A stretch of 63,715 bases of DNA, filler included, from Pelomyxa schiedti (taxonomy: Eukaryota > Protista > Evosea), in NCBI GenBank assembly GCA_020536535.1. It is 12 parts of 12 records of this genome, joined end to end, with 100 filler letters (N's around TTAATTAATTAA, not from the genome) between each part and the next. Parts side by side here need not be neighbours in the genome. Positions count along the whole stretch, not along the records: positions 54,865 to 59,088 come from JAHLWZ010001619.1; 11 more parts are not named here. One strand, given 5' to 3'. The notes under the pieces are model-generated. The model was not told where the DNA came from and did no database searches. It saw only the letters and a program-made list of their open reading frames with translations. The position numbers were made by a program, and so were the translations under genes. This document shows positions 54,865 through 59,853 of the stretch, in pieces. Each line of letters opens with the position of its first letter. Position 1 is the first letter of the stretch.

Positions 54865-56190
54865 GTGATGCTATCCCGTCAGCTTCGTAAATACTTACAG
54901 TATCATCTCCCAGCGATAAGTATTGTATTGTAAACTCAATAGCATCGTAAGATCCGCCGACATCAACGTTCCACTGGCAAGTGGTCGAATATTTATATTC
55001 CATTGACGAATCTTGTCCATTCCATGGATAGTCACTTTGAATTGTACCCTCGGGGGTTGTGTGTGTTGCGTTTGCGGAACATCCACGCGTGCAGTTTGAT
55101 CCAAAATAACCTTCATTGCACTCACATGAACTGTTGATATTGCAAGTGCCATGTCCATTGCAGGTAGGATCAGCACTGCAGTTGTCTGCCATTCCACAGG
55201 TCTCATAGTCATGTACAAGAAGTTTATCTTTGTAAATTGTAATCAAGTTGCTTGATATTTGAACATCATAATGTCCAGGAATTAAAAAGCATGTAAATAG
55301 CTTTGTATCATTCAGTAAATCTCGGTCTCGGATTGGATCAGTGCTCACTGGTACTGCTGTGGTCCAAGTGGCAAAGTTTCTTCTCTCTGCAGTTATGAAC
55401 GAGCGAATCAGGGTAAAATATATTTGAAAACCCAAGCCATTGACGCCATTGAAATCAGCCCTGTGCCTCTTGGTAAGAAGTGCAACCAAAAGGTGGGTAG
55501 GGTGAAGACATACGGTATTATATAGGATACATTGAAGTGTTGCAGGGAGCACAGCTCCTTAGGGTACGTTACGTATAATGCACAGTCGTCGGTCAGCCAC
55601 CCTGAGTTACATTTACAAAGCCCACGCAGTACGTCGCAGTCTCCGTGCTCATAGCATAGCGTCGAGCATCCAGGAGTGTAGCACTGATAGCGGACCACAA
55701 ATTCAATAAGTGTGGTTGCGCCCGTTGAAGCGTCAACAAACAGGAATGACATTACTATGGTGCCCAGGAAATCCGCACCGCAGACGACGCTCACGTCAAA
55801 GGAGGTGGACGAGGAGGGCACGGAGCCCGATGACGGGAGGTCGCATGAGAGCTCGCTGTGGAAAGTGGAATTCGTGGCCTTGTCTGTGGAGGCGAGGTAG
55901 TGCGACAGCACGTAGTTGGCCTGGGAGGGGCCCCCGGTGCAGTCGCCCCAGCACCACGTGAACGTCAAGTCGGCAGTTTCGGCGTCGGCAACTGCAACTG
56001 TGGGATCTGACCCCCACGTGAAACCGTCTTGCACGATGCCACATTTGACGGCCGGGGTGATGACCCAGTCGGGGGTGGTACCTACCTCGTAGTTGTATGG
56101 CTCCGGCAGCTGCACATTGATGTTTGGCCCTACGCACTGTGAGCGGACGAGCCCCGCAACACCAAGCAAAGCGCACACGGCACGAAACAT
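54865..56190 (-). CDS. EGF-like + CUB domain surface protein, 3' truncated
   Basis: Signal MFRAVCALLGVAGLVRS; EGF CYEHGDCDVLRGLCKCNSGWLTDDC and CNGHGTCNINSSCECNEGYFGSNC; CUB EGTIQSDYP...YKYSTTCQWNV...DTVSIYE. Confidence 0.85.
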
Positions 56191-56358
56191 CTTCGCGATT
56201 TTTTTGCACCTTCCTTCTGTGTCCAAGGATTCCAGTTACAGTTGCAGCATATGGGTTTTTATTCTCGTATTTGGTTAGTTGAACAAAAAAAAAAAAAAAA
56301 CCAAGAAACAGAAGCACAACCGCAGGCAGTTACAGAACAAAGACAACAAACGACGGCT

Positions 56359-56705
56359 ATGCCGCCAATATATATTTTGTTCCTCGTGGCTCTTATTTGC
56401 TTCATCGCTTTGGTACTTCCATTTTCTTCTTTCTCCAACTTACTATTTGTCAGGCCGATGCCAGGCTAGTACAACAACACACCCGCTGGGGGCTTAGGCA
56501 AGGACAAATCCAACGCTGGGGGCTTAAGTCGCAAGGGCAAATCCAACGCTGGGGGCTTAAGTCGCAAGGACAAACCCAACGCTGGGGCCTTAAGTCGCAG
56601 GGACAAACCCAACGCTGGGGCGTCAAGTCGCAAGGACAAATCCAACGCCAAATGAAACGCATGAGCCTCAAACACGTCAAATTAAACGTATGGGCCTCAG
56701 GATAG
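56359..56705 (+). CDS. Small secreted cationic repeat-peptide precursor (101 aa, 2 exons: 56359-56412 and 56454-56705)
   Basis: Signal peptide MPPIYILFLVALICFIAL joined by a 41-nt GT..CAG intron to ADARLVQQHTRWGLRQGQIQRWGLKSQGQIQRWGLKSQGQTQRWGLKSQGQTQRWGVKSQGQIQRQMKRMSLKHVKLNVWASG*. Confidence 0.75.
56484..56648 (+). repeat. 33-bp coding tandem repeat, about 5 copies
   Basis: Unit CAACGCTGGGGSCTTAAGTCGCARGGRCAAAYC; first unit 30 bp, so frame is preserved. Confidence 0.9.
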
Positions 56706-56809
56706 TACGCCAATGAAAAACCGGTGGTACAAACTAGTGCCAAACACACCAGCAATTGTCAATAAAAAAAAAACCAATTTGAATTTTTTTTTTTTTTTCA
56801 TTGTGTTAA

Positions 56810-58746
56810 ATGACAGCCCGGGTGGCCCTAGACAAAGCCCCGTTCTACCGTACAGCACCATGCGAGGAAGTACCAACTGATGTCTACGCCAAATGGGCTC
56901 AAGACAGAATAACCTTATTTACGGCTTTCGACCACATAAATGTGTGTCGTGGGGAGATAGGACGAACAACGGCCGAGGAGAGGATTTCCCAGGCAGTACA
57001 ACGTTACATGCCATTGATAACAATTGCTGACTTACGAAAGTACTTTTCTTCTCCTACACCTACACCGAGTTTTACTGTATGCAGGGACCTTCACTCCCAC
57101 TTTGCATTGCGTTTAGCACTCTCTGGAACTCCAGAGAACCGTGCATGGTTCATCAACCACGAGCGTACACTCCTCAAGTACAGGCTGGAGCGACTCTCGG
57201 CAGAAGACCTTTCTTCGTTCCTTGTGGCAAACAAGATGACATACAGAAATCCCTCCGCTGAGGAGTTTGTGGAAACATCTGCTGGCATAGCTGGAGCAAT
57301 GCAAGCAGTGGCATTTAGTGCTACCAGGGATATCGAGAAGGCAACTACGGCAGGAAATGCTGCTGGTGCATCTAGGACGTCTGTGTATGTTGTTCCATTT
57401 GAGGAAGCAATAGACATCGTTGCTGATCGTGGTGCATTCTTGAAAAACGGATATGCCTATGTTACGGCTGACCGCCTGCCTACTGTTATTATAGGAAAGT
57501 TCAGGGTTCACTTAACTGAAGCTTTGGCTCGCGCCCAGAGGGCATATCCTCAAGTAGTTGCAAAGGTTCCTTATCTGGTTCCACTGTTGGTAACACTGGC
57601 CAATAAGCAAGCTGTCTCTTCTCATTCAGCCATTCCCCGTCAAACTGCAGGAAGGATCGAAATTGAAGGTACTCCTAAAAACTGTTATATTCAGTGATGC
57701 ATCTAACATGAACAAAAACAGACCTCGATTTGCATTGTGTACGATCATTCCCGCCCTGTATGCAACGACTTCATCATCACCTTCGAGAAGAACACCACCT
57801 AAAGCACTGGGGGCGCCACCAATATGGGCTATTCCTGAAAGGTTCTTTTCAGATCACTCCTTGTTTTGTTCACTGTATTAAGGGCTTGGTTTAACTGTGG
57901 AACAGAGCATCGACTTTTGGAGATCAGAATTGCTGCACAAAATGACGGAAGATAAGTGGGCAAAGGAATATCTGTACAACGTGCGTCACAGCTATGGTAA
58001 AGTGGGTGCCCAGAAAGACTACACACCTTATGGTTGTGCAAAAGTAATTTCAATGATGGTCTGTAACAACACAGATATCTTGCACGCAATCATTTATCTT
58101 TAGGTACAAATCAGTGCAAATGAGTACCACGGGTGCCCATTTAATTCACACCAAGTGCCGAGAGCAGACCTGGAGGCCTTGTTACAGGTGAGAACTTGAA
58201 GAGAAACAAAACGTAACGACAAATAAGGGCAATGACTTCCCTGAATCAGTTGCATTTGAGATACTTCGGTATGCCGAAGGATACCACTTCCAGATTGCAT
58301 GCAGGAAATACTTTGAGGCCAAGCACCCGTCAGCCGACCTGACTGAGCTGGCATTCAACCACCCCAATCAATACACAGAGTACAGCCTCCAGTACTGGAA
58401 AAACAAAGGCAACTTGCCGGGTCCTCGCCTGCAGCCGCCCCGGCCCGCGCAGCAGCGCCAGCCGCCGCAGAACACTCAGGCTCCCATCAAGCAACCGCCG
58501 CGGGACCAACCTGCAGATCTGGGGAATAGTTTCGCCATCAGCCCGGAGGATGAAGAAGCCATTGCCGACATCGATTTCGACGATATCTCCGCCCCAAAGA
58601 CCACATCGGTAGACAGCACACTGCCTCCCGCCACCGCCTCTGATAGTACTATTGCCATTCCACAGAACCAAGCACAGCAACCCACAGATCTCCCACCTTC
58701 CGCACAAGATCTGACCCCATCCGCACCCCCCTCCACAGATCACTGA
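56810..58746 (+). CDS. PRIM2: DNA primase large subunit (p58/Pri2) with P/Q-rich C-terminal tail
   Basis: [11 protein letters not shown]...[13 protein letters not shown]; [21 protein letters not shown]; [30 protein letters not shown]; [20 protein letters not shown]; YHGCPF; HFQIAC; HPNQY. Confidence 0.95.
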
Positions 58747-59853
58747 ATAAAATTACACAACTGCCGCCGGCTTATCACTCTCGTGTGGCATTTTTCTTTG
58801 AAAGGTCCAGTGTTGCCTGACAACACACGATGTCACCACTTTCGCGAATCACTGTAATTCTGGTGAGATTTAAAACCCATGGAAGGGAAAGTCACGGGAG
58901 CGGTGGAGGCCCTGCAGCACATTAGAGATGGCGACACAGTCGTAATAGGTTATGGGGCCGAGGCAATATCTCCACGCCGGTGGCCTAACCAGTTGTTGTT
59001 TCCCAGGGGGATATGCCGGCGCTGGGCATGCTGAATACCTTATGCTGAACCTGGAACGCATCTTCCTGGAGAGCGGCTTGCCGCGGAGNNNNNNNNNNNN
59101 NNNNNNNNNNNNNNNNNNNNNNNNNNNNNNNNTTAATTAATTAANNNNNNNNNNNNNNNNNNNNNNNNNNNNNNNNNNNNNNNNNNNNAGCTGTGTGGCA
59201 GACTGCAATCCTAGGCTTGGTTTTGACTGTCCTGTCACCAGTAACTTCACTGCCACATCACAAACCACTGACAACTTGTTGGGAGTGGCCCAGTTGCAAC
59301 TGCAGAATCGGCTTATCATCTCTCTGCTCTGTGTGGAAGTTACAGCTGGGTCTTAGTGGTTTCACACAGCTTCCCAGTGATGTTTCCAATCAGAGTCTTC
59401 TCCATCACAGCTATTCTTTCATCTATCTGGTGGTTCACCAGCTGCAAGTAGACTCAGTTTTTCAGCTCCTTGTGTTCTTGTTGTTTTGAAAAGACCTAAA
59501 GCAATTTAAAAAGTTGATAAGATAACGAATTAAAGTGCATAAATTGTTAAAATAATTTATTATTTAACACCACTCCATGTCAGATCTTTTAAAATAACAC
59601 AAGAAGGATACCTGGGAAAAATCCTTTTTTGTGAGCAAAGCAGTTGCATCCCAATCAAACAAATTTCACCTTCACCTGAAGTTTGCAGTGCATGATTGCC
59701 CAACAGGGTCCCTTTGATCCCTCCACTTTCCATCTATTAATTGATGTCTGAAATAACTTAGGAGATATTTGTGAAGGAAAAACCCCATGTATGTAATGAA
59801 AATTGTGTTTCATCCCAATGTGGAAGTGGATTGTTTTTGATTGTGGCAGTGGT

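Follow-up and report, generated by a model that had tools for sequence, protein, structure and literature searches.

The nematode NLP-29 and caenacin (CNC) peptides are basic, with a high content of Gly and aromatic residues, lie directly after the signal peptide and contain no internal dibasic sites, and they are thought to stay uncut (PMC11993903), although they were initially classed as neuropeptide-like precursors (PMC2453101, PMC11993903). Fungal KEPs, on the other side of this divide, are defined by a signal peptide together with repeats and KR, RR or KK sites between the repeats (PMC6339444). In cnidarians, amidated peptides require a Gly that precedes KR, RR or R, while RWamide precursors are single-copy (PMC7523074). 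The amidating enzyme requires oxygen, and convertases work with a (K/R)-Xn-(K/R) spacing in which n is 0 or 2 (PMC6313938), while modifying enzymes cluster with the precursors of eukaryotic RiPPs (PMC7329392). In known peptides, Arg and Trp drive membrane activity (PMC3817730). Here, we compare with these systems a gene of Pelomyxa schiedti, an anaerobic amoeba (amoebozoan, archamoeba). It lies on a 4,224-bp contig that occupies positions 54865-59088 of the window, that is, of the whole stretch of 63,715 nucleotides that was analysed. P. schiedti is a detritus eater with three prokaryotic endosymbionts, one of them inside vesicles (PMC10579272), and its genes have about 7.4 introns on average, almost all of the GT-AG type (PMC8887013).

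The gene is genuine, transcribed, spliced and previously annotated, unnamed rather than hidden as an earlier note on this DNA had it. Public annotation lists it as Pelo_18072, a 'hypothetical protein' of 101 aa that matches exon 2 at 100% and whose product is identical to our spliced model (Table 1). The two exons and the 41-nt GT-AG intron of the earlier note hold to the nucleotide. One study supplied RNA from four single cells (runs X1-X4). Contigs of X1 and X3 omit exactly these 41 nt, the junction reading GT..AG on the plus strand, and every run covers exon 2, with no variant letters; the earlier note had staked the gene on a transcript and on splicing at this junction, and both are present. 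The intron belongs to the same size class as the four introns of the adjoining primase gene (40-53 nt), which are likewise spliced in the same RNA data. Contig depth over Pelo_18072 was 7-12, 65-69, 36 and 12, versus 4-12, 10, 11-13 and none over the primase gene, such depths being unfit for ranking genes; the transcript was present even in the smallest run. Alternative splices from the same ATG were rejected because the RNA shows only the 41-nt intron, as was an upstream in-frame ATG at 56251, which lies outside the RNA cover. Opposite the array, the minus strand can be read as an open frame (56450-56755) that starts hydrophobic, encodes Cys-Pro-Cys repeats and has no RNA support. It has a TTG start and no Pfam match, and the RNA junction reads GT..AG on the plus strand; we therefore rejected it as the coding reading, and it is probably a by-product of the repeat.

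Table 1. Features of the Pelo_18072 locus, in window positions
Feature	Positions	Strand	Basis
A tract, 16 nt, inside the 168-nt divergent promoter region common to Pelo_18072 and the EGF/CUB gene	56285-56300	.	Sequence; putative promoter role
Short 5' leader	56349-56358	+	RNA contigs of two runs start at 56349 and 56350; contigs are no proof of start
Coding exon 1, 18 codons, residues 1-18, signal-peptide hydrophobic core	56359-56412	+	Model, RNA, annotation, hydropathy
Intron, 41 nt, GT-AG, phase 0	56413-56453	+	Spliced in X1 and X3
Coding exon 2 and stop: last signal-peptide residues (cut predicted after residue 21), then the cationic mature chain of 80 aa	56454-56705	+	Model, RNA, annotation
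33-nt tandem array, 5.1 copies, coding for the 11-residue RWG unit	56484-56648	+	Period 33, 91% matches, score 253
Older diverged unit a, in frame, KR where main units have QR	56646-56672	+	17/27 nt identical to main unit in register
Older diverged unit b, starting 29 nt after a, out of frame with the present protein	56675-56701	+	21/27 nt identical to a
3' untranslated region, possible extra decayed unit from about 56708	56706-56763	+	RNA contigs extend to 56735 and 56763

Pelo_18072 sits between a divergent EGF/CUB-domain gene (minus strand, start at 56190) and the gene of the DNA primase large subunit (PF04104; 56810-58746, plus strand). The former (54865-56190) encodes a signal peptide, at least two EGF-like domains and a CUB-like domain, and is truncated by the contig edge, past which a 1,922-nt RNA contig of X3 continues. 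The primase has a Pro/Gln-rich low-complexity tail and four spliced introns (57669-57721, 57842-57882, 58059-58103 and 58188-58227). Its RNA occurs across the single cells in at least three versions, one reference-like and two differing by about 2.3% and 3.7%, both of the latter with the same 18-nt in-frame deletion near 58428, which suggests high allelic diversity, or else additional copies, inside one cultured strain. Pelo_18072 is invariant in X2 and X3 while the primase differs by 2.3-3.7% (chance about 0.005 each). We do not take this as selection, since the EGF gene shows no change in X3 either, the untranslated parts are likewise invariant and contigs lose rare alleles. The A16 tract and a T15 tract (56784-56798), directly upstream of Pelo_18072 and of the primase gene respectively, are likely promoter elements; A/T-tract inverted repeats flanking Pelo_18072 are homopolymer matches and were rejected as transposon ends. 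At the other end of the contig, a further gene start (58879-59088, plus strand) is truncated by the edge and likely contains a phase-1 intron (about 58949-59006). Its two short exons gave no match in Pfam or NCBIfam; by eye, we presume a likeness of the product to the N-terminus of acyl-CoA:acetate CoA-transferases.

The predicted protein begins with a hydrophobic stretch (residues 4-18, mean hydropathy 3.2), and a site that fits the (-3,-1) rule follows residue 21, with a weaker one after residue 19, in agreement with the cleavage after ADA proposed from the DNA. Beyond residue 21, the mature chain would comprise 80 aa and 9.4 kDa, with 9 R, 7 K and no D/E (the 16 basic and no acidic residues counted earlier) for a charge of about +16. 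It contains 18 Gln, 11 Gly and 6 Trp and is hydrophilic (GRAVY -1.19; mean Eisenberg hydrophobicity of the repeat unit about -0.2 to -0.4). Cys, Pro, glycosylation sequons and binding domains are absent from it. AlphaFold returned no confident or stable fold (pLDDT 51, pTM 0.12), from single-sequence runs that count as weak and gave two low-confidence models. RNA, composition and hydropathy together support what the earlier note had at its base, a spliced, expressed gene for a small, predicted-secreted, cationic repeat protein in an anaerobic amoebozoan.

The five in-frame RWG repeats and the KR of the tail were also read correctly: the array codes for five 11-residue units, the first of them one codon shorter than the others, and K86-R87 follows it. 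The units differ at seven variable sites, four synonymous and three non-synonymous, besides one codon indel. From such differences the earlier note had suggested selection on the peptide. The synonymous sites and the whole-codon nature of the indel still favour this idea, but the synonymous share is borderline when set against the 23% expectation (P = 0.057) and the Ile/Thr difference is not conservative (BLOSUM62 -1), which leaves a hint at most. The tail reads as older diverged copies of the unit and not as a separate module. The match of unit b to unit a (21/27) exceeds the maximum of 19 reached in 5000 shuffles, and unit b was probably once coding, since in its own frame it reads much like a, with three synonymous and three mild differences. 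Across unit b, the genome and the RNA contigs of X2 and X4 agree without gaps, and the frame shift is therefore no assembly error. Because the annotated C-terminal residues are the shifted reading of unit b, the last ten or so, terminal Gly included, are weak evidence for anything and probably incidental. A possible further decayed unit at 56707 matches at 15/27 positions, within chance. Since the tail holds diverged copies, one of them out of frame, we interpret the array as a moving coding minisatellite whose middle units have been homogenised and whose ends have decayed.

Searches for relatives used exon 2 as query, exon 1 being too short to search. They returned no relative among 1.84 billion representatives or 5.8 billion proteins, and among proteins of 46-245 aa exon 2 matched only itself. 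In the 1.84-billion search, the matches to long proteins were sums of weak repeat matches, 127 of the 150 being RCC1-type, with 29 bits for the best single stretch. These long RCC1-type proteins were rejected as homologues, as none has the RWG unit and the 29-bit stretch is not significant. Pfam and NCBIfam gave no match to Pelo_18072, and metagenome contigs gave none to exon 2 or to the adjoining primase, hence no syntenic locus from another Pelomyxa. The Atlas search, with a best score of 0.78, was a non-result, and plasmid matches were dismissed as unrelated simple repeats. No paralogue appeared among annotated proteins, and since the record represents its own cluster, close ones in the annotated set are unlikely. 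By these sequence comparisons, Pelo_18072 is a lineage-specific orphan gene of P. schiedti.

The interpretation that we favour, with a probability of about 0.42, draws on analogy: Pelo_18072 would be an uncleaved, disordered, cationic Gly/Trp/Arg polypeptide that is secreted and binds anionic surfaces, with a role towards bacteria. The signal peptide would deliver the protein to the secretory path and be removed after residue 21, leaving the 80-residue, 9.4-kDa, +16 chain with no division into separate units and disordered when alone. This chain would attach through Arg/Lys and Trp/Leu/Ile to anionic surfaces such as the bacterial envelope, acidic glycans or polyphosphate. Once on anions, it could form a run of beta-hairpins, with one Lys-Ser-x-Gly turn per unit; tandem hairpins would present an Arg ladder on one face, and we infer that anions would be needed for them to form. 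Its likeliest job would be coating, clumping or damaging bacteria, whether inside food vacuoles, inside the vesicles of symbionts or on the cell surface, in a mode resembling that of Gly/aromatic/basic animal antimicrobial peptides, while the array would gain and lose 33-nt units by slippage. Splicing and expression in RNA, the predicted signal peptide and the charge support this interpretation, and the chain contains neither an inter-unit dibasic site nor an acidic spacer or pro-region, in keeping with an uncut product. The NLP-29/CNC-like layout also speaks for it, as do, weakly, the AlphaFold models without a stable fold. Further points in its favour are the part that Arg and Trp play in the membrane activity of known peptides (PMC3817730) and a host that feeds on detritus and houses prokaryotic symbionts (PMC10579272). 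The hairpin step would be consistent with the match of the unit, in one register, to strand-turn-strand hairpins of two unrelated propeller families. Low hydrophobicity argues against pore formation; lysis and surface binding or clumping are equally likely, since the chain is hydrophilic. Antimicrobial genes usually form families, yet no annotated paralogue was found, and both the borderline signal of selection and the frame shift tolerated in the tail also weigh against the interpretation.

The headline of the earlier note, a multi-copy precursor of neuropeptide, Kex2 or RiPP type, is not supported, as there is no inter-unit dibasic site, no Gly-Lys/Arg and no DUF3328 or BURP neighbour. The protein has the predicted N-terminal signal peptide and the internal near-identical repeats of KEPs, but KR, RR and KK are all absent between its repeats, K86-R87 being the single dibasic pair. 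Convertases that cut at single basic residues follow a (K/R)-Xn-(K/R) spacing with n of 0, 2, 4 or 6. From residue 50 (unit 3) on, every main-unit Arg has a Lys seven residues upstream and fits (K/R)-X6-(K/R), whereas the K|S bond that has to be cut to free Gln-to-Trp cores misfits the spacing; only R|W fits. If the chain is cut at all, R|W thus seems the most likely site, and the proposed Gln-to-Trp core and Arg-Trp end would be destroyed. A convertase acting after each Arg would release four or five near-identical peptides of 10-11 residues, each starting with Trp-Gly, that could serve as signals or short antibacterials. We consider such processing unlikely, though it survives best among the alternatives. 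Besides the spacing, it draws support from the true KR pair of the older units a and b at the corresponding Arg, and the unicellular Chlamydomonas has both precursors and convertases (PMC6313938). Against this, it is units lacking KR that became amplified, spacers are absent, R39 breaks the spacing rule, and the P. schiedti supplements do not mention a kexin-type protease or carboxypeptidase.

A structural or adhesive polymer, an alternative that the earlier note had named alongside an antimicrobial peptide, ranks next, and we think it unlikely. In this view, a Gln/Gly-rich Arg/Trp 'sticker' would condense with acidic glycans of the coat or of the wall of the cyst, and its Gln and Lys might serve as cross-linking sites. 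The abundance of Gln and Gly, the 7 Lys, the low hydrophobicity, the disorder and the presence of transcript in the smallest run would all suit such a material, but the chain is very short for it, has no Cys, Pro, sequon or binding domain and belongs to no family. Marginally less likely again is a gene of recent origin that evolves almost neutrally, in which a transcribed coding minisatellite follows a hydrophobic leader and little function is under selection. Its empty record in protein databases, metagenomes and the Atlas, the 91% DNA identity between units, the out-of-frame tail unit and the non-significant synonymous excess are what such a gene would show; a clean predicted signal peptide that spans a precise intron, a sole array indel of one whole codon, the mild differences between a and b that point to an older coding history, and expression in four of the four cells sampled are harder to reconcile with it.

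The origin of the unit can be considered alongside any of these readings. One hypothesis, which we regard as improbable, would derive it from a fragment of a tectonin lectin blade by tandem amplification. The sole PDB match of Pelo_18072 is fungal tectonin 2 (E 0.34), and the amoebozoan Physarum is where tectonins were originally described, as surface proteins with a presumed affinity for bacteria (PMC2707011). Compared with 548 distinct tectonin blade hairpins, a set built from bacterial tectonins, the unit reaches 20.7 bits, a score that exceeds those of 14% of real blades and is attained by 21 of 400,000 unit reorderings and 15 of 3,000,000 random arrays. Against the blade motif W-G-V-N-x-x-G-x-I-Y-R, 10 of 12 positions hold common residues. 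The misfits fall on the two most telling positions, with Lys for Asn (0.5% of blades) and Gln for Tyr/Phe (0%), and a single unit reaches only E about 0.2 at Pfam scale. Pfam reports no tectonin (PF19193), for which six blades of about 36 residues above its cut-off are expected, against an 83-aa exon with an 11-residue period here; among the 120 matches listed there is no named Pelomyxa tectonin. RCC1 blades, in a comparison set selected by the query, align with the unit around the same Ser-x-Gly turn and in the same register, so a generic hairpin suffices. The resemblance to the beta-hairpin of tectonin and RCC1 propeller blades is suggestive only: the unit appears to be a hairpin-prone sequence, and descent from tectonin is possible. 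The bacterial tectonin-domain proteins examined (L001-L011), from Armatimonadetes, Acidobacteria, Longimicrobium and others, carry up to nine or more blade motifs, and many tectonin-domain relatives are named 'virginiamycin B lyase' in databases, yet Pfam assigns them to tectonin.

The specific products proposed earlier, pyroGlu...Arg-Trp-amide neuropeptide-like peptides or cyclic peptides of lyciumin or dikaritin type, are very improbable and, on the sequence, largely refuted: a Gln-rich stretch ending in Arg-Trp-Gly does recur five times after the signal peptide, but in 5/5 units the residue after Gly is Leu or Val, where cnidarian amidated peptides need KR, RR or R (and RWamide precursors are single-copy; PMC7523074), amidation was rightly doubted given its need for oxygen (PMC6313938), the P. 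schiedti supplements do not mention an amidating enzyme, the 4.2-kb contig encodes an EGF/CUB protein and a primase large subunit as neighbours but no DUF3328, BURP or other modifying enzyme, and the likeness to RWamides and lyciumin rests on two or three residues.

Returning to the uncut surface-binding chain, a broader proposal would make Pelo_18072 a dedicated secreted peptide of an archamoeba, either whole or cut at R|W into copies that are nearly identical, with a role in the control of bacterial food or endosymbionts or in signalling from cell to cell, and one that arose from one tandemly amplified beta-hairpin, possibly tectonin-derived. Repeat-peptide effectors of this kind are not described for Amoebozoa in the literature searched, and we hold the proposal, taken whole, to be unlikely. 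What is new here is that the tail consists of older diverged unit copies, one out of frame, together with the suggestive hairpin likeness to tectonin and RCC1 blades. Pelomyxa keeps three prokaryotic symbionts while digesting other bacteria, and the paper on this symbiosis names no host antimicrobial peptide (PMC10579272). The Pelo_18072 chain is short, expressed and cheap to synthesise, and so offers a direct test of host control over bacteria. Should the chain prove to be divided into copies, the range of multi-copy peptide precursors would come to include anaerobic amoebae; should it prove inert, the gene would remain a clear example of how a coding minisatellite moulds a young secreted product.

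Among known systems, the cnidarian Antho-RWamide precursors share with Pelo_18072 the letters Gln...Arg-Trp-Gly after a signal peptide, but they are single-copy, with Gly before a basic cut site, whereas Pelo_18072 has five copies and Gly-Leu/Val-Lys. Fungal KEPs and dikaritin precursors likewise combine a signal peptide with near-identical internal repeats; unlike them, Pelo_18072 has no KR, RR or KK between repeats, no Ste13 dipeptides and no DUF3328 neighbour. With tectonin (PF19193) and RCC1 blades the 11-residue unit shares a strand-turn-strand hairpin in one register, a match that is not significant, but it amounts to one third of a 36-residue blade, differs at the key Asn and aromatic positions, and makes a propeller impossible. 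Gly-rich cationic peptides of arthropods such as armadillidin are likewise small, secreted orphans (PMC9409781). Pelo_18072, whose secretion is predicted, is bigger (9.4 vs 5.3 kDa), is built of Gln/Trp/Arg units and has a putative antimicrobial role. From the NLP-29/CNC peptides it differs in having Gln-rich 11-residue units and neither QWGYG nor Tyr, and in being a single gene and not a cluster, in an amoeba and not an animal; no such peptide matched in database searches, which together with the missing QWGYG speaks against sequence kinship. The likeness to NLP-29/CNC is one of layout: a signal peptide, then a Trp-Gly motif shortly after the signal cut, within a short, basic, Gly/aromatic-rich chain free of internal dibasic sites.
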